DNA of 64,000 nt from Epithemia pelagica (taxonomy: Eukaryota; Protista; Bacillariophyta). The position numbers were made by a program, and so were the translations under genes. The notes below the pieces were generated by a model. The model was not told where the DNA came from. It searched no databases and saw nothing but the letters and a program-made list of their open reading frames with translations. Shown in pieces: positions 9,339 to 63,699 of this stretch. The stretch covers positions 1,054,001 to 1,118,000 of the forward strand of contig OX337239.1 in the NCBI GenBank assembly GCA_946965045.2. Direction: 5' to 3'. Each line of letters opens with the position of its first letter. The first letter of the stretch is position 1.

Positions 9339-9414
9339 CCGTCACGTGAGAACAACAGAACGAGCTGTGTACACCAACGCATTCAAGGACGACAATTCGA
9401 AGAAGTGAACGACA

Positions 9415-30026: not shown

Positions 30027-32288
30027 TCAATGGTGCGGCATGCCTGCCTCACCAGCAGCTTCACTGGCACCCCCGGGGAACGAGGCCGAAGGCGGCGACA
30101 AGGCCATGTGAGTGTCTTGTTCTGGTTGCTGTTGCATTTGGGGAATCTCAACCATGGTATCTTCGTCGCCGCTGCTGTCCAAGAGCATGTAATCCGATAT
30201 GATACCTCGCACTTGATCCTTCAAGACGGCACGAGACCTCTTGTAGTGCCAAATTCCGACGAGGGCGGTTACTGCCACAAGGCCGAGAATGGAGGAAAGA
30301 AACATCAATACCGAGACTCCCTGGTTGGTACTTGATTTTCCACCATTGCGAAACTTGGTGCTATGTTGGACGGCGGCTTCTCGGAGCAAGGAGTCGGGAC
30401 ACACACCATTGTTGGCCACGCAGCCACTGAAATCAGTGCATTCCAAAGAACCGCATCGGTGACACAATCGACGTTCATGGGAATCTTTGGGCATTTCGGA
30501 ATACTTGAGGTGATTGCACACGACTTGGAAGAGTGCATCGCCCGTTAGGGGTCGCACGTCAAAGGGTGCACGATCTACATTGATGGTGGGCAACACATGG
30601 ATTCCATAGTGCCTCTGAACTTCCAATTCTTCCTCCAATAAGCGATTGATCCCCTTGCCTTCCAGTCCACCGGAATGTTTCATGCAATTATTAACAGCAG
30701 TTTCGTCAATTCCAACTTTCTTGTAGATTTGCTTGGCACATTGACTATCATGGAACCGTTGGTCCGGTAGGCAGTTTTCATAGAATTCCTGAATATACCG
30801 CCACCAAAAAACTCCTTTTCCGGTCCCATCGTCTTGGGACCAGATACAGAGTTGCCGCAAGGACTCTGTCACCACGTCGGCTCCCGTCACTCGGTGGTAA
30901 CTCTCATCCTCATCATCGGGATCAATGGCGCAATACCGACCTTGGTTGGTACACAAATTAAAGCAATTGCTCTTGTGCGACTGTTCATTCTCCATTTGTT
31001 CCGATTCCTGGCAGCCCGTCTTGACGCCATCAATCAAGGACATGTGCAAGGTAAAGTTCAAGTGTTTGGAAAATGCCAAGGCCACTGGTTGGAATCGGGT
31101 GATCAAATTGACCGACATGGTGTCTGCCGGATTCATCCACAATTCCAAGTCTACCGTAGAGGATTCCAGGCGATACCCAGCCGGACTGAAACCGGGAGCC
31201 GTTTCCGTTTGCGGTGGATACTGCATTTCGACCTGTATCGTTTGATTGCCTTGCATAATGGTCCGCTTAAACAGATCGGCATCGCGTTTCCAAAGTAAGA
31301 CACTGGGAATGGTAATGTCATGACCCCCACTCCCATCGTTGCGCATAATAGGTTCTCGTCTGCAGGTAATCCATGTATGAACAGCAACATAGTAGATGTA
31401 TAGACACATGTATGAACAGCAACATAGTAGATGTATAGACACAAACACAAGATGCACACACATGAGAACGGGCATGGTTTGACGACAGAACGACAAAGAC
31501 AGTACAGAGACCAGTGTTCGTACCTTTGACAGGCAAGGGTTGGGTCGGCTTCTCCTTGCTCTTCCCATTCCTCCAGACAGGCATAATCCTTACAGACACA
31601 TTTAGTGTCAGCAATAATGACACCCGCCGCACCCATGTGTTGAGCATTGCGAACCTGAGAGGAAAGAAAACGAAAAAGTACAGAATCAAGTATGAGAAAA
31701 ATAGACCAGCAACAAACAAGCGGCAAACGACACAAGGAAATGGGTGTACGCTCGTTCTTTCGATAGCAAAAGCAAACCCAAACATACCTTTCGGACAAAG
31801 TTGCATTCGCCTCCACGGTTGACCATGAGGAGAAAGGGATGTGAGGAATCAAAGGGCTTTGTTGGATAGTACTGAATGGGTGGTGATAATCGATCGTCTT
31901 GAGGATTGCAAAAGTCCGAGTCCGCATAGTACAAGGGTTGTATAATGGATCGCCCATGAACCCGTTTACCAAACATGGCTTCTTCGTGGTTGAATCCCTG
32001 TGGACTGACACGGCGCAAGGATTCTGGTGACTACATAGAGAGACAAGTTGCACGGAAAGGAAAAATGAGATCCACGCATCGTCAAAGAACACAATAGCAG
32101 ACACGAGAGGTCGATTAGAATATGTTGCTCAAGTGACATCCCAAAACCAGTACGGCCACCCCAAAACTTACATGGACAATCAAGCGACTATTGGCAAGGA
32201 CAGTCGTAGATGACATGAGACAAATCATGCATACGAAGTAGACCGGGCTGGTCCTCCAGTGGCACGAAGAAGGACTTTTGGATGCCAT
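30027..32288 (-). CDS. VSR: VSR-like protein, paralogue 4 (~607 aa)
   Basis: Exons 32288-32172, 32030-31788, 31654-31524 and 31359-30027. Motifs 'NRGGECNFVRKVRNAQHMGAAGVIIAD', 'MRNDGSGGHDITIPS' and 'CTNQGRYCAIDPD'; TM helix; tail 'DYMLL'. Confidence 0.88.
31372..31441 (+). repeat. Perfect 35-bp tandem duplication inside intron 3 of VSR paralogue 4
   Basis: CATGTATGAACAGCAACATAGTAGATGTATAGACA at 31372-31406 and 31407-31441. Confidence 0.95.
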
Positions 32289-33012: not shown

Positions 33013-35292
33013 ATGGGATTGATCTCGTCGAACACGAAGATGAGTGCGACAGGCAAGTTAAGTTTCCTTTTCCTATGGCTGACGATTGGAACATGTCAAG
33101 CTATAGTGTCCGTGTCAACCAAACTACGAGTTCACGTAAGTACTGATGCTGCATTGCGTGAAATGGCAAAAGGAGAAATAATGCATGTTTCCTCATTTCA
33201 ATTTGTTCGATGTTGTCTTTGTCTTACTTCGCTCGACGTACTTTGGTGCACCATCGTCAACCCTCTGTTCGACCTACACCCACACACAATGATTCTATAT
33301 TCCTGGCTCAGCTTCCCGTGTCTCTGAGCCTTCACAACTCGTCCATGCCCTATTATGACCACCGCGAAGCCAATTTTGGTGCCCCACCGTCGGGTGGATC
33401 CCTGACGGCTCCCCTGTACTATGCCGATTCTACCTTTTGCAAGTCGCCCACTCATGATGTCCACGGCCATTCCATTGCGTACCATCCCTCGTCTCCGGTG
33501 CAAGCCTCCCTGAATAGTCGTGTGCCCTTTATTCTCATGGTGAATCGGGGAGACTGTCACTTTGTACAAAAGGTATGTCGACTCCCAGAAAAGCTGGGAT
33601 GTTTGTTGATGTGGAATTCGTAGTGTCCATGCATTACACCTAAATACTCATCCCTTTTTATTCGTTCTACGCACGTCAAGGTTCGCAATGCTCAACATTT
33701 GGGTGCTGCAGGAGTATTGATTGCTGATGATAAGTGTCTGTGTACGGATCCCACATGCCACCACACACCGGGTGCCTCTTGTGAAATGTACGTTGTCCTC
33801 AGCTGGCTCTTGCGTCCACCAAAGTTTTGCTTCGTGAATCCTGCCATGTATCTTATTACCATTCTCGTTTTTGTACCAATCATCATGCATTAGGGTTGAG
33901 CCCAGTATGGCCGATGACGGCAGTGGAAGAGATATTACAATTCCCAGTTTCTTGTTGTTCAAGCACGATGCTGACGTGTTTAAGCAAACAATTATCGATA
34001 CTGGTACACCAATGCGGATTGAAATGTCCTTTCCCTCGGCCTCGCTGACCTACCAAGACGACGAACCATACATGCCTGCCGACTCTTGGCGCGAGTCCAA
34101 CCCAGACGAACGACATGGACACATTCCCGTTGATTTGTGGATGTCCCCCTTTGACTATCATTCCAAGTTCTTTCTTCGTCATTTCCGATCCATGGCCGAT
34201 GCCTTTGAGAGTTGCATTGCGTTTAAACCGCACATGTATATTATTGACGGTGAATACAGTGCCTGCGTAGGGCGGGCAAAGCAGTATGAGTACAGCCACA
34301 TTAGTGGAACTGCAGAAGAAAATGAAGAAGAAGAGGAACAGGACTGGACGAATTTGCCCTGTTACAATCTCTGCACCAACGGTGGACGATACTGTGCTGG
34401 AGATCCCGATGGCACTCTTGGCAATGGCATTACGGGAGGGGACGTGGTAGCTGAATCGCTTCGTGAATTGTGCATCTGGTCCTATTACGGTCCCAGTTCT
34501 GACCCAAAGGGTAATGGTGAACTCGACCGACGTGGAGAACACTTGTGGTGGAACTATATCGCCAACTTTATCGACGGATGCGAAGAGGCTGCCAAGACGT
34601 CAAGACACGAGCTTGAATTGTGTGCCAATGAAGCAATGAAGAAAGCGGGAATTGACAAGGACGTTGTGGACCAATGTATTTCGAATTCGGGTGGACTGAC
34701 CACCAGTGACCATAACAATAAACTGGACACAGAAGTTGCGCTTCAACGGAAGGAAAATATTTTCATGCTACCTACACTGCGTGTTCATGGCCGAAACTTT
34801 GATCGCAGTCTGGAGGAACTCTTTCATAATATTTGCAACATGTGTGGTCTTGAACAGTCACCGGGAGTCTGTCGTTCCTGTGCTTATTGTCCGGATATCG
34901 CGGGTTGTGTGGCCCACGGCGGCAAGTGCCCCAGTGGAGTCACGACGACAACCATCTCGGGGACCGTTTCCTCCTCCAAGAAGAGTTCTGATAATCATCA
35001 CACGTTTTTTGACAGCAGAAATTCGAAACCAACGGGTGTTTCCCTGTCGACATTTCTTTCTTCCTTCTTTATCGTGACGGCTTTGATGCTGCTTGCGGGA
35101 TTTGTCCACTACAAACGTACGCGGCACGAAGCGAGAGAACACATTCGCTCCATTTTGGCTGACTACATGCCACTGACGGACGACGGCAATGCTTTCCCTG
35201 ACACCAGTGTTCACGGAAGGTTTCCAGGGGCGATGTGGACGATAGACGATACAACATACAGGTTCAACGAAAGTATATGTCTTGACTCTTGA
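33013..35292 (+). CDS. VSR: VSR-like protein, paralogue 5 (~629 aa)
   Basis: Exons 33013-33135, 33312-33572, 33681-33787 and 33894-35292. Motifs 'EANFGAPPSGGS', 'NRGDCHFVQKVRNAQHLGAAGVLIADD', 'MADDGSGRDITIPSFL' and 'CTNGGRYCAGDPDG'; TM helix; tail 'DYMPL'. Confidence 0.9.
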
Positions 35293-36042: not shown

Positions 36043-36744
36043 CATGTCCAAGTTGAATCGAAGTTGACAGGGAAATTTACGGAACAGCTTGTGGAACCGA
36101 TCATTTTCCAATTGCACTGCCATTTCATGGTACAGCAACTTTCTTGGCATATTGATTCAACCGAATGACAGCCACCAGACTTGGCATGCGTCGATCAAAA
36201 GAGGAGGATACAAATGGATGCACGGAACAACAACTTCATCGTTTCCAAAAAATCTCGCTAAACCTTTGGTGGAGAACGGCACCACAACAAGCGACCAAAC
36301 ATCTGTACCGTATGTTGATCCGTCACAGAGACTTGACAGGAAAGTCTAGCTGTACGATCTGGTAACTACCTCGCGGTTCCACGCAAAATCTCAACTGTTT
36401 GAATCCTCTTGCGTTTCGGCATGTCCAAGTGACGTCAACACGAGATCACAGAAAAGCTTGTGGTACCAATCTTTTCCCATTGTTCTGCCAATTCATGGCA
36501 CAGCAACTATCTTGGCATGGTGGATCAATCGAATGACAGCCACCAAACTTGGCACTAGTCGATCCCTGAGGATACAAATGCATGCACGGAAGAATAAACT
36601 TCATGCCTTTCACGCTACCTTTGGCAGAGAACGGCACCACGCCAAGCGACCAAACCGGCACCTGATCCGTACCAGAGCCTTCTGGCAGCTACCTCGCGGT
36701 GCCACGCAAAGTCTCAACTATTGGAATCGCTCCTCCTGCGTTTC
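36043..36744. repeat. Diverged head-to-tail tandem duplication (~375 bp and ~325 bp units)
   Basis: Copy 1 36043-36417 and copy 2 36420-36744 share blocks such as CATGTCCAAGT, AGCTTGTGG, CGAATGACAGCCACCA, GAGAACGGCACCAC, CAAGCGACCAAAC and CTACCTCGCGGT in the same order. Confidence 0.85.
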
Positions 36745-38679: not shown

Positions 38680-39295
38680 CCTTAGAAGCCGTTGGTATGT
38701 TTGGATTGCACGTGTACAAGAAATTTCTTTTTGCGGTTGAGAGACTCCGTTTGCGTTGTAGGATCAAAGCACAAAAGGAGGATATGAGTATGAGAGCGTT
38801 TGGTTTTTTATAACACAATTGCGAAGGCTTCGAATTGAGGGCTTTCGGTGATGCTGTTGCTGCTGTTGCTGTTTGGCTACGGTGTTTGGATGAGTGAATT
38901 CGTGTTGAGAGGGACCCGGTTCTTCGCGGCTGAACCACGCACATGCACAAGAAGTTCTCGTACGGCCCTACTGACCACACTCCATCACCCTTTCCGGTTA
39001 TTCGCGATTTTACTCTGAAATAAATAGTACGCCTACTGTTCACATTTTTGAGAGAAAATATAAGTAGTGTACAAGTTTCGCACAGTTGACGTTGTTGGAG
39101 CTGTTGAGACCTCAAAAACGAACACCCCAATGGCACCTAAAAGCAGCCATTTTATTACACTCCCGAGAGATATTTGGATGCGGCCTTAACACCATTTGTT
39201 AATGACCAACATGAGAAAGACTCCAAGGAGTATCAAAATGGAAAATATACAAAAATGAGACGTCACGACGACAAAATTCGAGAAAAACGACACTA

Positions 39296-39326
39296 CAAGC
39301 TGGCTCACATTTCGTAGTGCATGAGT
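39296..39326 (+). repeat. Left terminal inverted repeat
   Basis: Pairs with 46255-46285; preceded by TA. Confidence 0.93.
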
Positions 39327-39493
39327 ATATTAGTGTACAGGACTGTACCGAGAAAAAACTTGTACACAAAACTCCACAGTGGAAAATCCGCAGCAACCAT
39401 GACAGTGGGACGGCCCGATGTTTGGGCAAATACGATGGCATTCATGGCCTCAAACACTAGAACTGCTGTTACTAATCGACTAAGTAGGTTCTA

Positions 39494-40000
39494 TTAGACA
39501 TCTGCTGTGAAAAATAGGTTCTGGGTGGGGAACTTCGTCGTCATGTAGCCCAGAGCAGTCTTGAGCTCGTTCATGTGGAAGAGGCTCATATAGATGGTCA
39601 GGACCATTGGGTCCATGCTGCTCTTGGTATCAATTGTGCAGCGTGTATAGAATTGAATGCGGCCCTTCTTCTTGCTGGAGTCCGTGGGTGAAAGAACTTC
39701 CTTCATCACGGTCTTCACAATGAACCCAACTGGCAGCACGAGCAGCGGGTCAGCGAACTCAGATCGCGCTTCCCTTTTGTAGAAAGCCAACCGAAGATAG
39801 TCGGTGCTTGTCTCGCGTTGGAGGAGAGCATGCCCACGGTCCACAACATTTCTTCCATTTCGTTCTTCCTTGTCATCAACAATGTCCGACACGAGAACAT
39901 TCACCCTATCTGCGTAGAAACTTGTCCGAAAGTTGCACCGACTTTTGTCATTTTCAGGGCCGTCATGGTCCTTGTTGAAATAGAAGTCAATCTCCTCCAT
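39494..40000 (-). CDS. Transposon cargo: 168-aa protein, predicted PH-like fold
   Basis: ATG-started ORF inside the TIRs. About seven alternating-hydrophobic strands followed by a C-terminal amphipathic helix 'LFHMNELKTALGYMTTKF'. The fold call is inference. Confidence 0.65.
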   Translation of the reverse strand: MEEIDFYFNKDHDGPENDKSRCNFRTSFYADRVNVLVSDIVDDKEERNGRNVVDRGHALLQRETSTDYLRLAFYKREARSEFADPLLVLPVGFIVKTVMKEVLSPTDSSKKKGRIQFYTRCTIDTKSSMDPMVLTIYMSLFHMNELKTALGYMTTKFPTQNLFFTADV

Positions 40001-40281
40001 GCTTGTCGATTGTGGAAAACTGTTTACTCCACGCCGAGTTGATTGTTAGATTCAAATCACTTTTGTTTCTTGTTTGCGTATCGTTTCCGGATGCATCCAA
40101 AATGTGGGAGCCACACGGGTTGGTCGGATCTTGGGCGCGCACCGCTTTCCGTTGGTCTATCCGTTGCTCTAAGTAGGTTGATTGAGTTTGGTCTTGTCCG
40201 AGCATGCACATTCCCACATGCCATCCAACCAACACACAGCATGGCGAGTTCTGTGAGTGTGGGTCTCACAAAAAACAAAGC

Positions 40282-41214
40282 ATGAGCAGCAACAGCAACC
40301 ATCGCTACCCAAGTCGTACCCGCACGAAAACGGCAATCTTCCTGGAGGACATCAAGGAAGAAGCTGCTGTTACTCCAGGGAAGCCTTCTCGAGGAGGAAG
40401 GGCATCGGCAACGAAGCTCCCTCCGAAGAAGAGCTCCGGAAAGAAGAATGCCAGGAAAAAACGCCGGACGAAGAAGACAAATCCCGAGGAGCTCCCCCTA
40501 CCCCAGTCTCCAGAGTTTGTTATTTCCAAGGTGGTTGGGGAGACTCCGGACAACAGCGGGGTTGACAAGAAGCTGGCAGGAGGAGGAATGAACGACGCTG
40601 TGGTATTGGTGCCGGCGGCCAGCAGTGACGCAGAGAAGAGGTTCGAGACTGCGCTCAAGGAAGCGCAGTGGCATCTCATCCTTGGTGATGCCAATGGAGC
40701 AACAACACTTATGATTGGTAGAAACTATCAAGGCACGGGTAAGAAAGTCTCCATTGGAGAGATCGTGGAAACGCTCCGGCAAACCGAGAGCAGCCACAAT
40801 CCCAGAATTGACAAAACAGTCAACAACAATGGTAAGTTGAACGTGGACTCTTTGCAATTGAAATGAGCTTGTACTGACCTTGTATTGTTTTCAGGACAGG
40901 ATGGAATGATGGTAACCAGCACTCCCTTGAAGAAGGAGGACGATTTGATCGCTGAAGCGGAGACTGTTGCAAAATCCAATGTGGATTGGCAATACATGAC
41001 GCCAGGTGAAAAGCACGCACACAATCGACGTGAGGCGGAGAAGACTGTGCAGTTCATGCCTGGAAGTCGTGCATTTGAGCCGCAGCACAAAAGCCCGAGT
41101 CTCTTTTGCGAGGATGCTTCGGATGACCACGCAGCAACTTACGATTCACACGTAGATGATGGATTTGAAGATACGCAGGAAAATAGTTTTAGTCAGGAGT
41201 ATTACAAGTTCTAG
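40282..41214 (+). CDS. Transposon cargo: spliced ~289-aa protein with basic/NLS-rich N-terminus
   Basis: Exons 40282-40831 and 40895-41214. The 63-nt intron has GTAAGT, a TACTGAC branch site and a TTTCAG acceptor, and joins the two ORFs in frame (N-G|QDG). 'KKSSGKKNARKKRRTKK' tract. Confidence 0.75.
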
Positions 41215-41285
41215 TTACATATAAGAAACCATATCTAAATATTGAAGAATTGCTGTTGTTTACTGCTACTACTGCCTTAGTTCTT

Positions 41286-42389
41286 CTACTCATCTTCGTC
41301 GTCATCTGAATCCTCATCGTCCTCGTCATCCGAATCCTCATCATCCTCGTCATCCGAATTCTCTTGTTCTTCATCATCCGAATCCTCATCATCCAAATCC
41401 TCATCTTTGTCGTCATCGTTGCCATCATCGTCTTCTTCGTCGTGGTCGCCATCCGAATCTTCAGAAGTGTTGTCGTGTTCATCCTGGCTTCCTGCCCTCA
41501 TGCCCGACACCAGATTGTAGCACCAGAAGATTTCTTCATTCTTCTTGATGTTTCGTCTCGCTGTTGCCTTGAGCTTCGTACTGACTTGGACATTATAACA
41601 CTTGGCATCCGGGTCGACGGATTCGTTGGTCTTGTGCTTCTCGTACTGTGGATCGTTTGCAAAGTGCAAACCCATCCAAAGGTCTGATGCAGATGGATCC
41701 ACGAAGGCAAAAGGCCTTGTGCGCAGTTGAATAGCGTAAGCAGAAGGCGGACGGGACTTGTCCAAGACCTTCCCACAATAATATCCAAGCATTTCGCCTT
41801 TTTTGTAGGGCTTTGCTGCAAAAAGCCCAAGACGGGCGTTGTCCAAGGTTGATCGCTTGATCACGAACAGATCTTCGTCGAGGTACCGAACAATGCACTC
41901 GTACTTTTGTGAATTGTCGTTTAGGTCCACCATCATTGTCCCCTCGATGAGTAGATTGTCCTTATGTTTCTTGTGCTTTCCAGTCCCTTTCTTCTTGTTG
42001 TACTTGCTGGGGGCGTAGTGCTTGACTGCTGTGCCAACAGGTTGGCCCTTGGTGTCGTGGCCCTTCCGCACCTGTGCACCTTGAATGTTCACGATGCCCT
42101 TGATGTGGGAGGAAATGAACCGATACATTTCGATTCTTTCCTCCAAAGTGCCATTACCGAACAGTACTTCTAGCTTGGCCATCAGATTTTCTGCCTTCAC
42201 TGCCCGCGGAGTTCTTGTTGTCGCGATCTTTTTTTTCGCTCGTTCTTTCTGGTTGAGCTCATCCATCTTGTATTTTCGATTTTGCTGCTTGCGAGGAAGC
42301 TTTGAAGGACGATACATTGCTGCTTTTGCTCCTTTTGTCTTGGAGCGTGTCTGTCGCTGGGTAGCGGATCGTGTCTGTCGCTTTCCCAT
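41286..42389 (-). CDS. Transposon cargo: SET-domain (lysine methyltransferase-like) protein with D/E-rich tail (~367 aa)
   Basis: SET motifs 'RLGLFAAKPYKKGEMLGYYCG', 'LHFANDP' and 'ATARRNIKKNEEIFWCY'. Basic N-terminus; about 60-aa acidic tail with DEDDEDSD repeats. The first ATG is at 42389; the frame is open to a GTG at 42449. Confidence 0.88.
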   Translation of the reverse strand: MGKRQTRSATQRQTRSKTKGAKAAMYRPSKLPRKQQNRKYKMDELNQKERAKKKIATTRTPRAVKAENLMAKLEVLFGNGTLEERIEMYRFISSHIKGIVNIQGAQVRKGHDTKGQPVGTAVKHYAPSKYNKKKGTGKHKKHKDNLLIEGTMMVDLNDNSQKYECIVRYLDEDLFVIKRSTLDNARLGLFAAKPYKKGEMLGYYCGKVLDKSRPPSAYAIQLRTRPFAFVDPSASDLWMGLHFANDPQYEKHKTNESVDPDAKCYNVQVSTKLKATARRNIKKNEEIFWCYNLVSGMRAGSQDEHDNTSEDSDGDHDEEDDDGNDDDKDEDLDDEDSDDEEQENSDDEDDEDSDDEDDEDSDDDEDE

Positions 42390-42751
42390 GGTCGTTGCAA
42401 GCTGCTGCACTTTTTGCTGGGCTGCCGAAAAACTCTGGGACCGCTGCACTTTATGAAAGGGATCTTTGGGGGGTAGAAGGCGCAGAAACGCCCCCTTTCA
42501 GCTTCCGAATGAGTGTGGTGTTGAGTGAAAACCGCATTGACAGTAATCAGACTGTCGTTTGTACAATGTGGATCAGACTACTTGTCACCCTTTCACCAAT
42601 GAACTTCGCAGACCCTCGGGGGTTCAAAAAAAGGATTTCTCATTTTCTCACAAAATCTCGGAAGATGAAACAGGGAGAGGTCCTTGTGCATGACGACGTA
42701 CAAGTATGAAAGCTCTAAGGTACGTAAACACTTTGAATTATAATATTAATT

Positions 42752-45700
42752 TCAGCGTTCAGCTTCTTGTGCCTCCTTCCAGACTTGCTGGATGAAGGAA
42801 TGCTCTTGATCCAGCGTACAACGGTGAGTCTTCATACTTACATTCACATACTTCTCAATTTCTACAAACAGGATGTCGTTCGTTGTGCCCTGGTTCTTCT
42901 TGTCAAACAACTGATAGGTGAGCATATACCGCCGTGCTTTAGCGGAGAACTTGCGTACCGTGCTCAATGTCACTCTGCCAATACTCGTTCTCACCACTTC
43001 CATGAACTTTGTCTTCGTTGCTTTCTTGCTCTTTGTCAAGCGACGGAAGTATCGCTTTCCAAGACCCCATGCGTACTCGATCCCTTCACCCGCGAGTTCG
43101 CAGTGGTACTTCGGTGTCACAAGGATCTCAAGATTGCGAGAATATCGCTTTGAGAGATCAACCGCCAGTTGTTCGAGGGCGGATCTCTCGTTCTTGAAGT
43201 CCTCACATGATCCCATCAGGTAAGTCAATGAGTATTTCTTGTATTCTTCCATCATGTCATCGCGGACCTGTCCTGAACCATCCAACCATGTCTTACTCAC
43301 ATCCTTGCGGTATTCCTGGAGCTTGGTGGTGTCAATGAAACCACGCTCGCCCAGAACTTGGAAGAGACCCTTTGGTTGCCCGAGCCAGCCCTGCTCCATG
43401 ACAACTTGGTCTACCTCGGTTGGTAGCTTCCTTGCTGTCGAAATTGCCTGGAGCTGGTCAAGGGATTTGGAATGGTAGGCTTGAAGTGCCCTGTCGCCAT
43501 GTTGAGCTCCTTGTTGAATGTCATTTCAAATGAGCTCACCAATCAATTCTTTCTTGGACAGCTTGTGTTTCTTTGTTTGATTGGCTGGGTGGTCGAACTT
43601 CATTTGTTGTCGTTGCTCCTCCGTCAGAGGAACACCCTTAGAAGCAAATGGGCCAGGGTCCTCATCTGTGTAGACCATGGACTGCTTGGACCCTGGCTGA
43701 AGACGATGAGGGTGTGGATATGGACCAATGGACTCAACAATGGTCTCATGCATCCTGGGTACAACTCCACCCCAATCCTTGTTCATCGTTTTCTCGTTGA
43801 GCCCATCTTTCTGTTTTCGTCCGTGGCCACTACTGTTGTCAAAAAGAAAAACAAAATCAAAAGATGGGTACAGGATCATCAAACAATCAACCAAGTCCTC
43901 GAATTGGAGGGCCATGTGGTCGTAGTTCCACCAGCCATCATTGTTGGATCCATAGTCAAAAAACGTGCAAAACGCGCTGGCATCGGTGATCTGCCGGAGC
44001 CGCTTGTGCGTGCCACCAAGGACTTGTTTGGCAGAGTCATCGGCCAAGTAGGTCTGTTGCCTACGGGATTGATTAATTGCATCAATCTTCTCGGGCGTGA
44101 GCAGGACAACTTCGCCTGCGTTGTCCGAATAGAAGCCCCATGCCCGACTCACAAATGCGCTGAGCATGAGTCCATGCCCATTGTCTTTTGGCAAAAGGAC
44201 TCCACGCCCTTGATGGTCCCCCCAACTCTTCTTTGAGAAAGACCATTGCTTGAAAATGGCCTCATCTTGGCCAACAAGGACAACAGGACGACGGTCCGAT
44301 GGGAAACGATGCGACAAATTTCCTCCCAGCAGCTTGTTTTCATCTTTGACATAGGATGAAAACACCTCGGGAAAACAATCAACGTGATACTCCCGCATTT
44401 GTTGATTGGTTGTTGGGTCTTCAAACTCAAAGGCCCAAACGTCCTCCATGAGCTTTTCTGACACACCCTCAATCTCCCCGTGTTCCAGTTTGATTGCTTG
44501 GGTAGCAGGTATCTGGACCCACCGATGTGCGAGCTTCTCCAGCTCGAAGTAAGTGGAAATGAACTGCTTCCGGGCGGCGATATTTTCCGGATCTTCGTGG
44601 CGGTCCGTGTAATAGGACTTTTTGGTTTCAGAAAATCGAAAACCAGCATAATTCAGCATCTTCCATGCTGTACTTACAGAAACACTGGGGAGATTCACTT
44701 TTTGGCGGAACTCATCCAAGGTTAGCAGCCCTGTGATGGATGGCTCCCCGTCTTGGCTCTCCGTGTCTATCTCTTTCTGATACACCACGGGGATCAAAGT
44801 ATCCCGGATGTACGTGGCGGCCGTCTCGCAGGAAAGGGTCTCCAAACGTTGACTGGCCCACTTCTGCAACAACTGGAGTGCTTCTGGGTATTGTCCCAGA
44901 AAGTATGGACATGGCTTCTTCCCTATCTGGATGTACCAGTTTGGATGGGGGAAGTTGCCATTGACCCGGAATGCAACATTGGCTCGTTGCACAGTCTGCC
45001 AATGCTGCAGACCGCGATACGACATTTGACTCTGGTCGGTTGCATATTTGCAACACGACGTCCACGTGGCACCATCCTCCATTGTTTGGAGAGCTCGTTG
45101 ATATGTCAGCCTAAGAACCCTCATTCTCATGAGCATTCTTGGGATCTGGGAGTCTTGGGGTGGCTCATCTTCACCCTTGTTGATGAGAGACAAAAAACAA
45201 TCAAACCGTTGTTCCGCCAATTCAAGTGACTCAATCCACCGTTCCAGCTTCTTTCTCGTTGTCTCCCCATTCACTCTCGGACCAAAGATTTTGCTCACAA
45301 CGGGCCGGTCGAAGAAATCTACGGCAGAAGAGTCACTGGAGGCATTGGAATGCTCATTGTTGTTGTTGTTTCCATTGTCGTTTCCTGTGCCTGTGGTTGT
45401 TGTTGTTGTGGTGGTTTCCAGTGCCTCTTCCAAAATCTGCTCTGGGCTTGGTGGTGATGACGCTGCCGTTGTGGCAGTTTCATCATCATCCTTGATTGGT
45501 GTTGTGGGTTTCTTGCGTTTGTTCCTCCCTCCAATTCGAATCCGATTGTGACTTATGAAGTTAAGCCACTCCTCATTCGTGTGGTTGAATTGAGGTGGTG
45601 GATCGGTCTGACGAGCCGAAACATAGTAGAATATTTGTTTCCCACCTCGACGTCGCACCTCGTGGCGGTAGATACCCTTGGGATTCCACTCTTGCGATAG

Positions 45701-45907
45701 GAAATGGAGTCGCCATTCACTACCTGAGCGCATTAAAGATCGATTCATCATTGTTGCGTCGGATAATTCCGGAATCCACTGCTTCAAGAAGACGGCAATC
45801 TCAGCGTCAATAATCCACCGGTTTGTCCAGAGGAAGCGTATTGGATGGCATCTGAAGCCAAATTCGTCGCATATGGTTGTGTATGGCCCTGTATATGATT
45901 GGACCAT
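42752..45907 (-). pseudogene. DDE transposase (~1,050 codons) interrupted by a single in-frame TGA
   Basis: The ORFs 43526-45958 and 42752-43399 share one frame; only the TGA at 43528-43526 separates them. Motifs 'YTDRHEDPE', 'VGQDEAIF', 'YGSNNDGWW', 'FLFDNSSGH', 'PKGLFQVLGERG' and 'TPKYHCELAGEGIEYAWG'. Confidence 0.88.
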
Positions 45908-46254
45908 TTTGTCTGTTCGGGCACAGGCAGAGAGATGGAGGATGAGGGGACTGCCCACGATGTTCGACAGTAGCTACTTTCACTGCTCCTGGAGACTGAA
46001 CCACAGGTCGAAATGCGCGACACCCCTATGATTTTCTACTACTTTTATATCTATCCTATCGATTAGGTTGGGTGGTGTTTCGCATTTCGACCGGCGAATG
46101 GCCATCGTCGCATGAAGCGGTCACTAGGCGTTATTGCATTTTGCATTTTTCAATATGTGCGTGACAAAATGTGAGGAACACGAAAACCGTAAGTGATCCG
46201 AAACGCTGGGGTACTGTGGGCTAAAGTGTAGTATACAATTTCCCACTATGAAAA

Positions 46255-46285
46255 ACTCATGCACTACGAAACGTGAGCCATCTTG
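46255..46285 (-). repeat. Right terminal inverted repeat
   Basis: Pairs with 39296-39326; followed by TA. Confidence 0.93.
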
Positions 46286-47115
46286 TACGACAGATTCGCA
46301 TCTCCTGAGAATTCCCCCATGGCGTAAATCGTAAATCAGAACCTACCCTCGACAATGGCCCACGTGTAGCGTGTACGAGTACTCGTACGAGTAGGTGTAC
46401 AATAGAGCTACAAGTTACAAGCCTCTCTATTGTACTCTTACCTCGATAGGAGCTCTAGGAGTAGAGTAATTCCAAAGGCACTCCGTGTCTATCTACTTCT
46501 TCTACTCCTAACTCCAAACCCCTCATACTCCTATGAGTTTCAACATAATATATCATGCATCATGTCAAATCAATCATTTACTCCAAAGTGGTTTTGTATT
46601 GCAGATTCGTAATCTCCTCGATACTTGAAATCGTATCTCATGATATTCTCATGCTATTTAATAATGATGAGTGGAGATATGAGATATACAACTGTGGTAG
46701 AATAACGACTACTAGAGGACTCTCTAGTTATGGATGGATGGATATGGGATAGTCTCAGTTTTGCTCCTCCTTGGACAAATACTGGGATAATCTCTCGTGT
46801 TGCCTACCGGCTGTGGCAAGAAAAGGAACACCACCGCAACCATGCGGTGACAAGGGCAGGATAGAGCAAAGGGAACTGCCTGACAACTGGGATGCAGAAC
46901 AATAATACTATAAGACCACATGCTCTGGAATCACACAACTCTGGAAGAACAGCAGACGAAAGAAAAGAATATTAATAGCGAGACAACTACTAATGTGCTA
47001 GTAGTTGTAGAAGCAGAGCAAATCGTGGAACGAATGGATCATGCTTGCCGTTCCGGTAGAATGTTGCTTGTCGGTAGTCTACCTAGTAGAGGTTGTGCGT
47101 GTGTGTGCTGTGATT

Positions 47116-49368: not shown

Positions 49369-50091
49369 GGTTTCTAGCTACCAACAACCAAGCACAGAAA
49401 AGAACAAAGAAACACAGACGGAGGTGCCGTCCATTCGTTGGCCTGTGCCGAGTGTGTGTGTGTGGGTGTCAACAGTGATCCACGACACCACAAGAAAGAA
49501 TGGAAAAAACAACAGCCAGTGCGGATCTTGGATCCTACCAAGATATGATAGGAACGACACCACTAAAGGGTTCAAGAATGAGGAATTCGAAACGAAGGAA
49601 AGAGGCTACGAATGATCACCCAACTTGATGATCTACCGCATCAACAAAGCTGCCACCGACACCGACACGGACGACCACATCTGAACCGCCGAACGACGCG
49701 AGAGATTCGTTCTGCATGGTGGGGGATGGACGACCGACAACACGTACTTTGCAGCCAAAAAGATAGTCCGTTCCCCCTACTTGGAACATGTGGGGTTCGC
49801 TTTCATACCCCCGAAATCGAATTCGGGATGGGCGGGGTGCCTCCGACGGAAACAATGCAGCTGCAGTCCAACCGTTGGAGTACGTACTTCAACAGTTCTA
49901 TCGCATATTAGTCGCTATTTTGGAGAGCGTGATTACTGATGACCTAGCTTCACTAGCTAACTATTGGATCTCAATCCAATAGTTTTGCTGCTTCACCTTC
50001 ACCACATCCATTGCGAGGAAAAACCACCAAGCCTGCACCTCCGCTAGTCCCGAAAAGGCACACCACACGCACGGCGACACCACCACCCGTC

Positions 50092-53000
50092 ATGCAAACA
50101 CTCTCTGGTCTCCGAAACCGCAATTCGCGAAGCAAAGACAACGCAAAACACCACCATGGTCGACACCACACCACCACAACCGTCACGCCCAACCCCGTGG
50201 GAAGGACAGACCGGCCTCGGGCCCAAACCAACAAAGGGGGAACAAAACCCACGCCAATTTTGGCCAACAACAACCAAACAGTCATCAAGCCCAACGAAAG
50301 GACACAACACGTTGCTTTTAAACCAACCGAACAAAAACCCACACCGTCAGAGACAAAAAAGACCCAACAGCCAATCCCGACGAGGACCATTGCGACTCAA
50401 ACAACCCACGTGGACAACGGAGAAAGACATCACTTGGGCCCAATCCAACTACGTCAGAACCAAGATCACGCCGCTACCCTACGCCCAACAGGACAACCAA
50501 AAGACTCCCCAAGGCACTTGCCAAATGCCCAATCCCCTCAGCAACCCCTCACAATTTCTCGGGAAACCCAGAACTTGCCCCAAGCCTCCAGCAGAGACGC
50601 CAGCCATCGACAGCCAACAACCCAAACCATGCAACTCCATTCGAAGCCAACCAACAGCAAGCAGCCTCCCCGCCGCCAAGTCGCGGCCAGGGCCAACACC
50701 CCTGGATCCCCAAACCGGGAAGACTTTCCCCCCCTCCGTCCCAGCCATACCATCACGCCCGCTCGTGTCAGTCGCCCAACCAACAAAGGCCGCGCCTCCC
50801 CGCCCGCAAACAACAACAACCACCATGCTCTGACCGACCAAGCCACGGCCACCGTCACCATCACCCCCGTCCACCACCGTCACCACGAAACCGAAACCAC
50901 CACCGAGACCGACCACAACAACAGTACCAACCACAAAAATATTGAAAACCAGAAAAACGAAAACGAAAACACCTTTAAAACCCAGAAAAAACAACACCCA
51001 GACAACACCACGGAACCGAACCACCACGGAGAACACACGACCTTGACAGACAACCACAACGAGGACGACACAGGAACCAACAACTACGAAGGCGACAACA
51101 ACGAGACGGCGGCAACCCCGACCATCCAAAACCCATACCGGCCCACGAAAAAGACGGCCAAAAGCCTCCTGACGCCCAAACCAGGCCCCAAAAAAGAAGC
51201 CCCGAGCATCCTCATCCACCTACATGTGGCAGTGGTGCACCATACAAACCCACAAGTGGAGTCATCCCTCCCACGCCTCACGGAGAAATCCATCAAAGAC
51301 CACATCAGCGACATCCTCGCCCACCACAGCCATCGCCAGGGCGAAGACCCAATGAGTCTGCAGGTTCACCGAGTGGACTTTCTTGAAACGAAACAAGGCC
51401 CCCGCAACCCACCACGCCAAAACAACAACAACGAAACGACGGGCCGCGGAACCAGGAACCACACCTCCTCTTTCCACGTAACCCTCTCACCGGCACCAAC
51501 CAACGACCAATTCGACAGCGACGTCTTCATGGACCAAGGCCTCCGCTTGGTCACCCAACTTTGGCATCGTCACCACCGGGACGACTACCAGTTTGACGAA
51601 AGGGGCGACCAATGCGTGCTACGAAACGGCACCCCACAATCAAACCCGACGGTCAACCCCAGGTTTGACCAAATCAACATTTACACACCGGCATGCAACA
51701 ACCGCGCATGCGAAACACACGGCATCGTGGCAGGCATTCCAGCCTCGGCACTCAAACACCGCCGCAGCCTGGTCAACTTGGCCACAACCATCCGGAACCT
51801 CCTCACCCCACACTTGCCCGACAAACTTCAAGGGCTTGATTTCCACAACCACATTGGATGCCGCGCAGGAGTCTTCAGCGGAGAACTGAAGTCGAAACAG
51901 CGCGGACAAGTCCCCGTCATCTACATCGCCGCCTCGTCGCGATTGAACTTCGAAAGCCTGATGCGCTCCTACAACGCACATCAAACAACCAACCAAAACC
52001 AGGAACTCTGCTGGTTCGACAACTGCATCCAACTCCTACCGATGCCAAAGACTCAAGCTGCCAGGACCACAACACTGGAAGCACTCAAAGATCTTGACCA
52101 ACATTTCAACGCATGCGTCAAGATCCGCCTCCGCCCAATAAACTTGGAAGCAACCGAGGAAGACTGGGACCAACTAGCCGCCATGGAAGAATTTGCCGGA
52201 CTCTTTCCAGAGTATGCAAACGCCGACCCCGACCCCGAATCCTACACGTTATATCTGCGACGCACCCCGGATACACATCACTTGAACGCAACTTCCATTC
52301 GACAATACGAGAACTTCCCCGACAACATTTTGCTCCCCACCATGGCCGCCATGGCCGCGTCGCCACCGAGGCCACTGGACGCCAACAACCCACACAGCCC
52401 ATCGACAGGAAGCCACACCAACCGCCTCGTTGCATTCACAACCAGGATCCTACGACGACGCGCAAACCAAACAGACAGGACCCACAACGAAGACACCGAA
52501 CCAACAGACGAGGAACAAAGCCGCGGCGACACAAGGACCCGCACCAGCCCCCCCGGCACACCACCACCGAACAAACGACCATGGCAGGACAACAACGATC
52601 CATACGAAGACGAAACAAACTGGCAGGAAGTAGTCGCCAACTCCCCTCACCTCCGGTCGCCGCCACACGAAACCACCGGAGAAGACAACACCAAACCACC
52701 CGCCAACAACAACAAATTCTCGCCTCTGGCAGACAAGCGAAACGACACAGAACATTCCGACGACGAAGCAGAATTCGACGACGACGCCATGGAAACCGAG
52801 GAAGGCACCGACGGTTCCCAACCATTGATCGACGACGACACGGACATCCCCCAGTCCGGAGCAACAGCGAACGAAATGGAAACAATAGCCAACTACGTTC
52901 GCACCCATAACCCATCGAGACTGCCGGACATCCAGCGGTACCTCCACGACATTCGGTCTTTCTGCACCGACCAAGACGCGCAAGACGCGTGGGATTACGC

Positions 53001-53097
53001 ACAGTCCTTGATCGAGACTGACGATCCCACCGTCGCCGGCCCCCGCACCGGCCATGTGGTCCCGCATGACAAATGGGCCAAAGGGCCAAATGAGTGA
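50092..53097 (+). CDS. Retrotransposon ORF1 (~1,000 aa), no recognisable domain
   Basis: The frame is open from 50011; the first ATG is at 50092. Disordered basic N-terminus, structured-looking core (about aa 400-790) and acidic C-terminal region. Its stop overlaps the ORF2 ATG. Confidence 0.8.
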   Translation: MQTLSGLRNRNSRSKDNAKHHHGRHHTTTTVTPNPVGRTDRPRAQTNKGGTKPTPILANNNQTVIKPNERTQHVAFKPTEQKPTPSETKKTQQPIPTRTIATQTTHVDNGERHHLGPIQLRQNQDHAATLRPTGQPKDSPRHLPNAQSPQQPLTISRETQNLPQASSRDASHRQPTTQTMQLHSKPTNSKQPPRRQVAARANTPGSPNREDFPPLRPSHTITPARVSRPTNKGRASPPANNNNHHALTDQATATVTITPVHHRHHETETTTETDHNNSTNHKNIENQKNENENTFKTQKKQHPDNTTEPNHHGEHTTLTDNHNEDDTGTNNYEGDNNETAATPTIQNPYRPTKKTAKSLLTPKPGPKKEAPSILIHLHVAVVHHTNPQVESSLPRLTEKSIKDHISDILAHHSHRQGEDPMSLQVHRVDFLETKQGPRNPPRQNNNNETTGRGTRNHTSSFHVTLSPAPTNDQFDSDVFMDQGLRLVTQLWHRHHRDDYQFDERGDQCVLRNGTPQSNPTVNPRFDQINIYTPACNNRACETHGIVAGIPASALKHRRSLVNLATTIRNLLTPHLPDKLQGLDFHNHIGCRAGVFSGELKSKQRGQVPVIYIAASSRLNFESLMRSYNAHQTTNQNQELCWFDNCIQLLPMPKTQAARTTTLEALKDLDQHFNACVKIRLRPINLEATEEDWDQLAAMEEFAGLFPEYANADPDPESYTLYLRRTPDTHHLNATSIRQYENFPDNILLPTMAAMAASPPRPLDANNPHSPSTGSHTNRLVAFTTRILRRRANQTDRTHNEDTEPTDEEQSRGDTRTRTSPPGTPPPNKRPWQDNNDPYEDETNWQEVVANSPHLRSPPHETTGEDNTKPPANNNKFSPLADKRNDTEHSDDEAEFDDDAMETEEGTDGSQPLIDDDTDIPQSGATANEMETIANYVRTHNPSRLPDIQRYLHDIRSFCTDQDAQDAWDYAQSLIETDDPTVAGPRTGHVVPHDKWAKGPNE

Positions 53098-63100: not shown

Positions 63101-63699
63101 TATGGAGGATAATAAATGGAGAAACCCCGGAACCATGTTCAAACGCTTTTACAAGCAGGTATGCTCGACCGAGTATAGGTGTTTGTGCCTACGACGGAGT
63201 CCTTCGGTGTTCTCTACTGTCTTTGTGGTTGTGGCTCTGGCCAAAGGGATGCTTCGCTGTTCTTCAAGTACAGTCTTGGAAGACTATGGAGAATACACCT
63301 GAATACGCGGCCATCGGTGCGGACCGTGTTATGAAGATTACAGAAGAAGAAAAAGCAGCGGCTGCTGTGGAAGAGAACTCATTGAATGAACTAGGGCGCT
63401 TGGTTCAAATGGAAATTGACCGTCAAGCTTGGCGAGGTGAAATGGCTTCCAAATCCTACACCCTGTTCAAGGCGGTCGGTGGAAGTGGAGCAGCTGCATC
63501 GGTTGATACGGGCGCAGCTGAGCAGGGTATTGGTCAACCATTACCACCTATTCAGCGGGATGCAGCATTCAAACAAGGTGGTTGGATTGCATCAGCGGCG
63601 CAGCAACGCAGAGCATTAGCGTTGGACGGAGGAACGGTCGTGACAAAGCTACGTCTCAAGGTTGGAAACAGCAACACTGGTGGAAATGGAACTAAATAA
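57138..63699 (+). CDS. TAF2: TFIID subunit TAF2 (inactive M1-aminopeptidase fold), ~2,123 aa
   Basis: Exons 57138-59979, 60084-61084 and 61171-63699 join in frame at GT-AG introns. TAF2-type motifs 'SCWVPCLDS', 'FGFAIGPF', 'SPLLWVRVDP...QPD..LAEELFHDGDASAQVDAIRSL' and 'YRVRSAC'. No HEXXH motif seen. Confidence 0.82.

Follow-up and report, generated by a model that had tools for sequence, protein, structure and literature searches.

The window, i.e., the whole 64,000-nucleotide stretch of DNA analyzed here, contains an open reading frame (ORF) for a SET-domain protein next to a gene resembling those of transposases. This raises the question of whether a transposon carries, and exploits, a lysine methyltransferase of its own. 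Transposons are usually regarded as the targets of histone methylation rather than as its writers. In diatoms, methylation of H3K9 and H3K27 silences transposons and, since these hosts are also genetically tractable, the idea is testable.

Boundaries and copies of the mobile element

Blastn comparisons revealed that homology between the window and other copies of the same unit starts at position 39294 and stops at position 46287. These limits coincide exactly with inverted repeats, indicating that the SET gene is transposon-borne, as the first-pass annotation of this DNA had proposed. The interval comprises the dinucleotide TA on either side (39294 to 39295 and 46286 to 46287) and an element proper of 6,990 bp (39296 to 46285). 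The latter is bounded by 31-nt terminal inverted repeats (TIRs) on the left (39296 to 39326, forward strand, CAAGCTGGCTCAC..., kept in copies L001, L002, and L012) and on the right (46255 to 46285, reverse strand), which correspond to inverted repeat I2 (33 nt, 94% complementary). The window element is 98.9% identical to positions 6031 to 13025 of L001 and 83.4% identical to positions 6261 to 13237 of L002; the fourth copy, L012, ends at the same TIR. The flanks differ between the window, L001, L002, and L012, indicating several insertions at unrelated loci. Those of the three fully sequenced copies share only the TA, which is also present at the one sequenced end of L012. Found at 7 of the 7 sequenced element ends, the TA is a candidate target-site duplication, but it may instead represent the outermost bases of the TIRs.

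Exact homology boundaries were detected in four other copies located at different loci of the ENA assembly ERZ21939226, and one assembly contains, at loci other than that of the window, no fewer than four young copies plus one that is 83% identical. Because copies within one assembly are 98.5 to 99% identical, the window copy and those of ERZ21939226 appear to originate from the same genome. The unit of ca. 7.0 kb is a sharply bounded cut-and-paste (TIR) DNA element. Its exact boundaries ruled out the possibility that the SET gene is a host gene adjoining a transposon. The search for TIRs and target-site duplications in the divergent copies L003, L004, L005, and L007 yielded nothing convincing, and a clean TTAA was not found at L010.

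The transposase-like gene and two accessory genes

The largest gene of the element (42752 to 45907, reverse strand; 1,051 codons in intact copies) had been annotated as a transposase. In the window, it is interrupted by a single in-frame stop codon at 43526 to 43528 (C>T at 43528 in comparison to L001); the ORF is continuous in L001 (1,068 residues) and L002 (1,088 residues). We found 81 homologs in diatoms and metagenomes. Residues D548, D690, and E944, with a D-142-D-254-E spacing, are invariant in 36 sequences of the family, and the structural model displays the β-β-β-α-β...α order of an RNase H-like fold. No match was obtained in Pfam with pieces of the protein, with its full-length sequence, or with 36 family members, or in the PDB by phmmer and profile hmmsearch. 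Alignment with a pogo-type DDE_1 protein by hhalign gave a probability of 0.1, and the recurrent highest-probability Foldseek match of the whole 1,051-residue model, the Mos1 transposase, was not significant (probability of 0.57, E value of 0.11).

Several features are reminiscent of the IS630/Tc1/mariner group: the TA flanks, a helix-turn-helix-like region preceding the GQDE, FDNSSGH, and ELAGEGIEYAW sequences, and the resemblance of these three sequences to the D, D, and E blocks of that group. However, the Pfam models DDE_1, DDE_3, and HTH_Tnp did not match the protein, which is three times larger and displays a D-142-D-254-E spacing far outside the DD34-41E/D range. Based on the motifs, the invariant D/D/E triad, and the TA flanks, we infer that this ca. 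1,050-residue protein is a DDE-like transposase belonging to an unclassified diatom-wide family. The initial assignment is amended on two points: the gene, whose product finds no sequence counterpart in Pfam or the PDB, is a putative transposase gene, and its window copy contains a nonsense codon. A large diatom-wide transposase family missed by current profile libraries matters for the annotation of diatom repeats.

The two other genes of the element are of conserved but unrecognized types. ORF3 (40091 to 41214, forward strand), located on the strand opposite to that of the SET gene, consists of two exons (the first extending to 40831 and the second from 40895 to 41214) separated by a 63-nt intron (GTAAGT...TTTTCAG, 40832 to 40894). 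In the window, a 2-bp insertion (40261 to 40262) causes a frameshift near its 5′ end. ORF3 has no match in Pfam. ORF4 (39494 to 40000, reverse strand; 168 residues), the most constrained accessory gene, is 62% identical in L003 and has no match in Pfam or the PDB.

Organization of the SET protein

The SET ORF reported by the first-pass annotation (41286 to 42449, reverse strand) was found intact, with the quoted motifs at the expected places. It encodes 387 residues from a GTG codon. Met21 (42389), the first ATG common to all copies, is probably the translation start, giving a gene extending from 41286 to 42389 (reverse strand; stop codon at 41286 to 41288) and a 367-residue product. The ORF is located downstream from the transposase gene, in the same orientation, with a gap of 302 nt between the transposase stop codon and the ORF (362 nt to Met21), and it is unbroken in the window copy, L001, L002, and L012.

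Three regions can be distinguished. The N terminus (residues 21 to 90; 42180 to 42389, reverse strand), which is disordered in the model, contains 33% K/R and has a pI of 11.7; it probably mediates nuclear localization or contacts with nucleic acids or histones. At the other end, an acidic tail of 66 residues (residues 322 to 387; 41289 to 41486, reverse strand) contains 73% D/E and was delineated by its composition and as repeat family D1. Comparable tails are present in L002 and L003, and the tail is kept even in a copy whose SET protein is only 39% identical. The basic and acidic extensions described initially were thus recovered. Between them, the SET core (residues 193 to 312; 41514 to 41873, reverse strand), defined by model confidence, Foldseek, and motif conservation, contains the NARLGLFA (41817 to 41840), GYYCG (41772 to 41786), HFANDP (41649 to 41666), and EEIFWCY (41517 to 41537) motifs, all on the reverse strand.

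Residues 207 to 312 matched the Pfam SET profile (PF00856) with a score of 34.3 bits (E value of 3.3e-8), above the gathering cutoff of 22.4 bits; paralogs scored 25 bits. In the AlphaFold2 model, most of the core had a pLDDT of >90. Foldseek retrieved 78 PDB matches at an E value of ≤1e-3, and all of the 50 matches listed were SET or PR domains with a probability of 1.0. A profile built from the SET family matched EZH2, PRDM3, MLL, NSD, and SETD8 (E values of 1e-10 to 1e-4). Since the 387-residue protein contains only four Cys residues (positions 185, 225, 284, and 310), none of which are clustered, it lacks the Zn-binding pre-SET and post-SET Cys clusters of the SUV39, SET2, and EZH types. 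The description of a minimal SET domain is therefore correct.

Conservation of the catalytic motifs

Word-indexed searches with the SET protein, with or without its tail, retrieved two paralogs only. The acidic tail swamped word seeding of the whole-protein query, and an exhaustive profile search recovered the SET family. Motifs were counted in an alignment of 70 sequences, two rows of which are gapped at the later motifs (n = 68 there). The first Gly of the GxG motif (motif I) is replaced by Arg in the window protein (R-L-G). Gly is present at this position in 53 of the 70 sequences, Asn in 7, Arg in 5, and Lys in 2, and Arg thus appears to be one among several tolerated variants. The second Gly is conserved in 70 of 70 sequences and the Tyr/Phe of GxYxG in 68 of 70. 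In HFANDP, Asn is invariant (68 of 68 relatives), and 63 of 68 relatives have Asp in place of the canonical His of NHS, as does the window protein. The terminal catalytic Tyr (Y311 in EEIFWCY, which conforms to the ELxF/YxY pattern) is conserved in 68 of 68. The invariance of Asn and of the terminal Tyr, together with the prevalence of Asp, indicates that HFANDP is a hallmark of the whole subfamily rather than the result of decay. The deviations from canonical SET motifs pointed out in the first-pass annotation are therefore real, but HFANDP is not an alteration private to this protein.

The register of HFANDP relative to RFxNHS is itself deduced: HMMER places H262 on the canonical His, whereas the comparison with FAND sequences and the secondary structure of the model favor N-D standing for N-H. 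This segment fell outside the residue-level alignment to PR domains. In SUV39-type enzymes, the His of NHS matters. The FAND core is also found in a bacterial SET protein annotated as a lysine methyltransferase. A scan of bacterial and archaeal genomes, a weak test relying on two N-terminal peptide patterns only, retrieved no relatives.

Selection on the element genes

At a dS of ca. 0.6, the SET gene as a whole had a dN/dS ratio of 0.27, and its core, with 0.17, had the lowest ratio of any part of the protein. Neither value is near 1, at variance with the neutral decay considered at the outset. The ratios for the transposase (0.16 to 0.18), ORF3 (0.16 to 0.5), and ORF4 (0.12) likewise indicate purifying selection on all four genes of the element. 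The SET ORF is unbroken in 5 of 5 copies of two close subfamilies, including the window copy, in which a nonsense codon has disabled the transposase gene and a frameshift the start of ORF3. Selection and family conservation are incompatible with an ORF that arose by chance or that is decaying into a pseudogene. Between the window and L001, the SET genes differ by 5 synonymous and 9 nonsynonymous changes.

SET relatives are associated with diverse transposons

Alignment of the relatives places the window protein in a distinct subfamily, referred to as FAND type, with the consensus AGxGLFA..GxYxG..GxHFANDP..GEELFxxY. All FAND-type members of known genomic context are located in or beside transposons. 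L003 displays the same four-gene order, with a 60%-identical transposase; its SET reading frame is still open and still encodes the acidic tail, but motif I is gone. In L004, the SET gene is downstream from a 42%-identical transposase, and L007, from another assembly, is an internally deleted element retaining SET. L008 and L009, from the assembly that contains the young copies of the window element, are two copies of a Harbinger element, a 7,396-bp repeat with TIRs of ca. 750 bp that encodes a DDE_Tnp_4 protein (40 bits) and a SET protein. In the same assembly, a piggyBac-type transposase gene lies beside a homologous SET gene within 0.9-kb inverted repeats. Neither the Harbinger nor the piggyBac-type loci contain ORF3 or ORF4. 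Finally, in a metagenome contig, a SET domain is fused to the C terminus of a Ty3/gypsy gag-PR-RT-RH-INT-chromodomain polyprotein. Relationships in the SET tree do not follow those of the transposases, the SET protein of L004 pairing with the piggyBac-associated P0099 (support of 100/97). The occurrence of such a SET family next to several unrelated kinds of transposons suggests that the elements supply a chromatin-modifying tool of their own.

Possible role of the SET protein

Our preferred explanation, with a probability of about 0.6, is that the transposon is still active, or was so until recently, and that the SET ORF is a passenger gene with a function, encoding a methyltransferase that shifts chromatin in favor of the element. 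The basic N terminus would direct the protein to the nucleus, where the SET core would bind S-adenosylmethionine (SAM) and methylate a lysine, most probably one in a histone tail. The acidic tail may assist docking on basic histone surfaces or regulate the basic N terminus. The resulting mark would alter chromatin at the element or its targets, and the element could benefit by countering silencing of the H3K9 or H3K27 type or by steering its integration. Features that weigh against this proposal are the Arg at the first Gly of motif I, the Asp replacing the His of NHS, the loss of motif I in L003, and the lack of a post-SET region that could close the channel for the cofactor or the lysine.

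The same features speak for a catalytically dead SET protein that binds chromatin or histones, either to tether the transpososome or to protect the element, its groove reading a lysine or histone tail and its acidic tail binding histones in the manner of a chaperone. The conservation of the long tail in L002 and L003, in the latter despite the loss of motif I, and the best target-normalized TM-scores, which were obtained with PR domains (PRDM3, PRDM12, and PRDM5), are in agreement with such a role. To our knowledge, several PR domains have no demonstrated activity. However, the most conserved residues of the family are those needed only for catalysis or cofactor binding (the Asn, the terminal Tyr, and the second Gly), most family members combine a canonical GxG with the absence of an acidic tail, and the core is the part of the protein with the lowest dN/dS. 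We therefore regard a pseudo-enzyme as unlikely.

Still less probable is an active methyltransferase that modifies the transposase, ORF3, or ORF4 of the element itself, or a host factor, and thereby tunes transposition rather than chromatin. Many SET enzymes methylate nonhistone proteins, and automethylation has been reported for SETMAR. The constant coencoding of SET with a transposase, here together with two further conserved proteins, would fit such a substrate. In contrast, members of the subfamily accompany four unrelated transposition machineries, which argues against any one transposase as the substrate and in favor of a substrate shared by all four, for instance chromatin, and ORF3 and ORF4 are missing from the Harbinger and piggyBac-type loci.

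Passive carriage of a captured host gene devoid of function for the element (Pack-type transduplication) is very improbable: host fragments do get captured by DNA transposons, and the youngest copies differ at few positions, with no strong skew, but the SET gene is whole, has an intergenic region of its own, is under purifying selection across subfamilies, is retained in an internally deleted copy, and remains linked to transposases down to 42% identity and in other superfamilies.

Comparison with known systems

SETMAR (Metnase) is a primate fusion of a SET protein, carrying pre-SET and post-SET regions, with the Hsmar1 mariner transposase; it is an immobile host gene that captured the transposase by exonization. 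SETMAR and the window element have in common the physical linkage of SET to a cut-and-paste transposase that targets TA, the transposase and its TA target being putative in the window element. Here, however, SET is a separate gene of a mobile element, and kinship with mariner is only suggestive.

The first-pass annotation had drawn a parallel with chlorovirus vSET. The resemblance holds at the level of the fold, since vSET and other giant-virus SET proteins are also minimal SET domains without Cys-rich flanks encoded by selfish elements, and Foldseek retrieved giant-virus and phaeovirus SET proteins (E values of 1e-6 to 1e-4). The window protein is three times longer than vSET, has basic and acidic extensions, and has N-D in place of N-H. 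A specific kinship was rejected, viral SET proteins being no closer than cellular ones. The highest target-normalized TM-scores (0.63 to 0.65) were obtained with the PR domains of PRDM3/MECOM, PRDM16, PRDM12, and PRDM2, which also lack the canonical His of NHS, and the N-terminal half (FE[LV]K.S.[LI]..AG.G[LV]FA...[IF]..GE..G.Y.G) aligns best with PRDM3 and PRDM16. However, the PR-domain profile PF21549 did not match the window protein and gave 17.3 bits for the L004 relative (cutoff of 27 bits), the window protein has no zinc fingers, and EZH2, MLL, and SETD8 score equally well.

DNMT-bearing retrotransposons occur in dinoflagellates and charophytes. Other transposons carrying epigenetic enzymes have been described in fungi, in which KDZ, Harbinger, and other elements encode TET/JBP proteins (PMC12730594), and the same article cites anti-silencing by VANC proteins of VANDAL elements. 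These carriers and the FAND-type elements have in common the repeated recruitment of a chromatin- or DNA-modifying enzyme by heterogeneous transposons; the enzyme class and the host group differ, and the role of SET is here a proposal.

The closest precedents come from Phytophthora, in which HarbingerS and some MuDR transposons bear SET genes (Kojima and Jurka, Repbase Reports 2014, cited in PMC12730594). They are, like the window element, stramenopile DNA transposons in which a SET lysine methyltransferase gene lies beside the transposase gene, and the Harbinger element of L008 and L009 looks like the same kind as HarbingerS. The window element differs from them in having neither a DDE_Tnp_4 (Harbinger) nor a MuDR transposase but a DDE-like protein of ca. 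1,050 residues, TA flanks, and two extra conserved genes. Conceptual novelty is moderate because transposon-borne SET genes have already been cataloged in oomycetes; the breadth of the carriers, the evidence for selection, and the defined subfamily signature are what the present analysis adds. If the preferred reading of an active chromatin methyltransferase is correct, SET-carrying elements manipulate host chromatin directly, in parallel with plant VANC, fungal TET/JBP, and algal DNMT.

A broader version of that reading is possible, although we advance it tentatively. FAND-type SET proteins would be active histone methyltransferases and would form, in diatoms, a portable chromatin module owned by transposons and passed between at least three to four superfamilies, serving in anti-silencing or in the steering of integration, and the transposase would represent an undescribed superfamily-level lineage among eukaryotic DNA transposons. 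The superfamilies concerned would be the unclassified DDE family, Harbinger, the piggyBac type, and Ty3/gypsy. In the Ty3/gypsy fusion, the location of SET after the chromodomain would form a read-write pair.

SET-domain gene and its subfamily

The open reading frame (ORF) at 41286-42449 on the minus strand of the window comprises 387 codons if counted from a GTG. An ATG at codon 21 (MGKRQTRSAT...) is common to all copies of the gene and is likely to be the eukaryotic start, in which case the protein consists of 367 residues. The Pfam SET profile (PF00856), for which the gathering score is 22.4, matched residues 207 to 312 of the ORF at 34.3 bits (E value, 3.3e-8), which confirmed the SET assignment for which the first-pass annotation had proposed a profile search. 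The motifs quoted in that annotation, NARLGLFA (41817-41840), HFANDP (41649-41666), and EEIFWCY (41517-41537), were all recovered. The domain is minimal, lacking pre-SET and post-SET regions, because the protein contains only four, scattered Cys residues. The basic N-terminus and acidic tail were also found as described, with K/R accounting for 33% of residues 21 to 90 and D/E for 73% of residues 322 to 387. The ORF is co-oriented with a large upstream ORF and begins 302 nt past its stop codon (303 bp in the annotation), M21 being located at 362 nt. The structural part of the earlier reading was largely right.

The AF2 model displayed pLDDT values above 90 across most of the SET core, and the 50 Foldseek matches listed were all SET or PR folds with a probability of 1.0. 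Among these listed matches, PR domains gave the top target-normalized TM-scores (0.63 to 0.65), and SETs from giant viruses and phaeoviruses matched no better than cellular SETs. The family profile matched EZH2 and PRDM3 (1.3e-10), as well as MLL, NSD, SETD8, and PRDM12/2. The ORF is a real gene, and its modeled product adopts a SET fold.

An exhaustive profile search, with a query lacking the acidic tail, against 1.84 billion representatives retrieved 170 relatives at E ≤ 1e-3, including 19 at E ≤ 1e-10; most relatives were 120 to 400 residues long. Alignment of 70 sequences defined the signature AGxGLFA .. GxYxG .. Y .. GxHFANDP .. YN .. I..GEELFxxY. The first Gly of motif I, which is Arg in the window protein, is variable (Gly in 53 sequences, Asn in 7, Arg in 5, Lys in 2, and Ser and Gln in 1 each), and the second is invariant (70/70). 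The Asn of HFANDP and the terminal Tyr were each present in 68 of 68 sequences and the Asp of HFANDP in 63 of 68. HMMER placed H262 of HFANDP opposite the canonical His, whereas the first-pass annotation had read this motif as N-D in place of N-H. The latter register is favored because the gypsy-fused relative and one bacterial relative retain FAND without LH and because, in the model, L-H-F forms a short turn and N lies in a bridge. Thus, the deviant HFANDP characterizes the subfamily and does not reflect decay.

Mobile element carrying the SET gene

Two 33-nt inverted repeats (39294-39326 and 46255-46287) are 94% complementary. A search with the SET protein retrieved only two database relatives, P0001 and P0002, both from ENA assembly ERZ21939226. 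By blastn, window positions 39294-46287 were 98.9% identical to positions 6031-13025 of one locus of that assembly (L001) and 83.4% identical to positions 6261-13237 of another (L002), the limits of homology being exactly the inverted repeats and the flanks being unrelated. In a further copy on a separate contig (L012; 98.5% identity), homology also ended at the inverted repeat. The SET gene is therefore carried inside a mobile element, a finding that is both genuine and well delimited. TA was the sole sequence common to the flanks of the copies, at every sequenced end. From these ends, we read TA as a putative 2-bp target-site duplication bordering 31-nt terminal inverted repeats (TIRs; 39296-39326 and 46255-46285); alternatively, TA could represent the outermost bases of the TIRs. 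The window also contains vacuolar-sorting-receptor, bHLH, PTPLA, and prenyltransferase genes, and introns are few in the host, which is a eukaryote. Among named organisms, the closest relatives of the element proteins occur in the diatoms Fragilaria crotonensis, Thalassiosira exigua, and Epithemia clementina, and a chlorophyll a/b-binding gene is present at a neighboring locus in ERZ21939226. On these grounds, we regard the host as a diatom.

The element contains four genes, encoding a transposase-like protein (42752-45907, minus strand), the SET protein, ORF3, and ORF4 (39494-40000, minus strand; 168 residues). ORF3, on the strand opposite to the transposase and SET genes, consists of two exons, and its frame is continuous once a canonical 63-nt intron (GTAAGT at 40832 to TTTTCAG ending at 40894) is removed. 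Neither ORF3 nor ORF4 matched Pfam, and ORF4 had no match in the PDB. The transposase ORF is uninterrupted in L001, L002, and L012 (1,051 to 1,088 residues); in the window, a C>T change generated an in-frame stop codon at 43526-43528. The window copy of ORF3 contains a 2-bp insertion near its 5' end (40261-40262) and a 3-bp deletion (40664). In the window copy, the transposase and ORF3 are damaged and SET and ORF4 are intact; the L001 and L012 copies are intact throughout.

Nei-Gojobori dN/dS ratios, obtained by comparing young copies with L002 (dS, 0.4 to 0.65), were 0.16 to 0.18 for the transposase, 0.27 for SET, 0.16 to 0.5 for ORF3, and 0.12 for ORF4. Within the SET gene, the ratios were 0.19 for the N-terminus, 0.29 for the middle, 0.17 for the core, and 0.25 for the tail. 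Neutral decay with a ratio near 1, which the first-pass annotation had named as part of the evidence against its proposal, is therefore not what the SET gene displays; the gene is maintained by selection. The youngest copies differ by 5 synonymous and 9 nonsynonymous changes, too few to be informative. Noncoding sequence of the element diverged less between the window and L002 (JC, 0.13 over 1,065 aligned nt) than the synonymous sites of its genes (0.36 to 0.65), suggesting either constraint on TIRs and regulatory regions or inflated dS estimates.

Transposase-like protein

The transposase-like protein had no match in Pfam, whether searched as pieces, at full length, or with 36 family members, nor among PDB sequences, profile search included. 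A total of 81 homologs, all lacking annotation, were found at E ≤ 1e-54 in diatom genomes and many metagenome contigs. Three residues were invariant in the 36-sequence alignment, D548 (GQDE), D690 (FDxSxGH), and E944 (ELAGEGIEYxW). In the AF2 model (mean pLDDT, 78.5), D548 falls within a long strand. A long helix precedes the strand that ends with D690, and E944 opens a helix preceded by another strand; an insert of ~235 residues separates D690 from the latter strand. The predicted secondary structure follows an RNase H-like order. A Foldseek search with the complete model returned nothing significant, the highest probabilities belonging to several entries for the Mos1 mariner transposase (0.57; E, 0.11) and to RNase HIII, and hhalign against a pogo-type DDE_1 protein returned nothing. 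We regard the protein as a putative DDE-like transposase in an unclassified diatom family, because the invariant D/D/E residues and the modeled RNase H-like order point to such an enzyme but the profile, PDB, Foldseek, and hhalign searches provided no support. Its motifs and the TA flanks resemble those of IS630/Tc1/mariner elements, but the protein departs from that superfamily in both profile and spacing.

Relatives in other transposons

At locus L003 of ERZ21939226, the transposase is 60% identical, and the accompanying SET, ORF3, and ORF4 are arranged as in the window element; the SET ORF is open and ends with an acidic tail, but an in-frame deletion removes motif I. At L004, a transposase with 42% identity is directly followed by a 404-residue SET gene with canonical GAGFGVFA and LIND. 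In assembly ERZ25042306 (L007), SET follows transposase remnants in which residues 10 to 60 are joined to residues 986 to 1051; the element has undergone an internal deletion and retained SET. At an Epithemia locus (L006), SET is present and no transposase was detected within 9 kb. A transposase homolog without SET was found in F. crotonensis (JAKSYS010000423.1); it may belong to a minimal 3.6-kb element (7757-11329) with 13-bp inverted repeats beginning with TA, the repeat match being weak (E, 0.06).

The subfamily recurs with several transposon types. Two copies (99.7% identical) of a 7,396-bp element (L008, 5375-12770; L009, 5378-12770) encode a 413-residue ORF, a 261-residue SET protein 31% identical to that of the window, a DDE_Tnp_4 (PIF/Harbinger) transposase (40 bits), and a 140-residue ORF. 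Their unusually long TIRs (~750 bp) begin with GGGTTACCCGG, and no obvious 3-bp duplication was seen at the flanks. At L010, a 267-residue SET protein is encoded 2.4 kb from a fragmented DDE_Tnp_1_7 (piggyBac-type) transposase (32 bits), both within a 12.8-kb segment (1868-14681) bounded by inverted repeats of 0.9 to 1.2 kb that are 98% identical and hold internal tandem repeats. The association with a piggyBac-type element is only probable, because no clean TTAA was found at this segment. A separate 212-residue acidic ORF (10082-10720) just downstream of this SET gene echoes the tail of the window protein. Finally, a Ty3/gypsy polyprotein of 2,440 residues (P0167), encoded by an 8.4-kb ENA metagenome contig, contains gag, protease, reverse transcriptase, RNase H, integrase, SH3, and chromodomain regions followed by a C-terminal SET domain sharing FAND.

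In the SET tree, all DNA-transposon-borne SETs fell into one 18-member clade (support, 90/82), and the P0167 domain was outside this main clade, nearest to a bacterial MAG protein (P0131; MDC0366806.1). The L004 SET paired with the piggyBac-associated P0099 (100/97), apart from the clade of the window protein (100/99). Thus, SET genes moved between transposon lineages or were acquired repeatedly. SET-carrying HarbingerS and MuDR elements of Phytophthora are the subject of two Repbase Reports papers from 2014 cited in PMC12730594, so that this kind of element is already known, if from a little-known precedent. Our literature search turned up neither functional work nor any description from diatoms or of this transposase family; as far as it reached, novelty lies in the carrier, its set of four genes, the form with an acidic tail, and the range of carriers.

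Proposed function of the SET protein

The first-pass annotation had proposed a lysine methyltransferase or a catalytically altered histone binder acting in anti-silencing or self-regulation, which is plausible as a hypothesis. We estimate at about 0.6 the probability that the protein is an active methyltransferase in the service of the element. The basic N-terminus would mediate nuclear import, the core would methylate lysine in a SAM-dependent reaction, with a histone tail as the most likely substrate, and the acidic tail may have a docking or autoregulatory role, the element benefiting through counter-silencing or target choice. Several features speak against activity: motif I contains Arg, Asp takes the place of the His of NHS, a post-SET region is lacking, and motif I is deleted in the L003 copy. 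A noncatalytic chromatin binder appears unlikely. The combination of a chromodomain and a SET domain is the read-write layout of SUV39-type enzymes, which the domain order of P0167 resembles; by analogy, this arrangement in a retrotransposon hints that chromatin is the common substrate, and action of an active enzyme on a nonchromatin substrate is improbable. That a gene maintained by selection is a functionless passenger is hardly credible.

Other features of the window

Two direct repeats of ~340 bp (72 to 90% identical; 36079-36744) are located just upstream of the neighborhood of the element, and the ORF at 27530-29653 contains a ~130-bp tandem array (28164-29051). Five ORFs of ~500 residues, 4124-5638(+), 7143-8642(+), 11206-12711(-), 30027-31568(-), and 33871-35292(+), have in common nucleotide blocks that are 70 to 80% identical and look like a local paralog cluster; the first encodes a vacuolar-sorting-receptor thioredoxin-like domain. 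In the block from 50011 to about 63699, which is probably a large retroelement, the two strands differ to an extreme degree in base composition (GC skew, -0.26 to -0.36; AT skew, +0.24 to +0.49). The block contains two very long ORFs at 50011-57025(+), of 1,028 and 1,323 residues, the second of which matched RVT_1 weakly (37 bits), followed on the same strand by three large ORFs (57138-60026, 60062-61144, and 61189-63699) with no Pfam matches.
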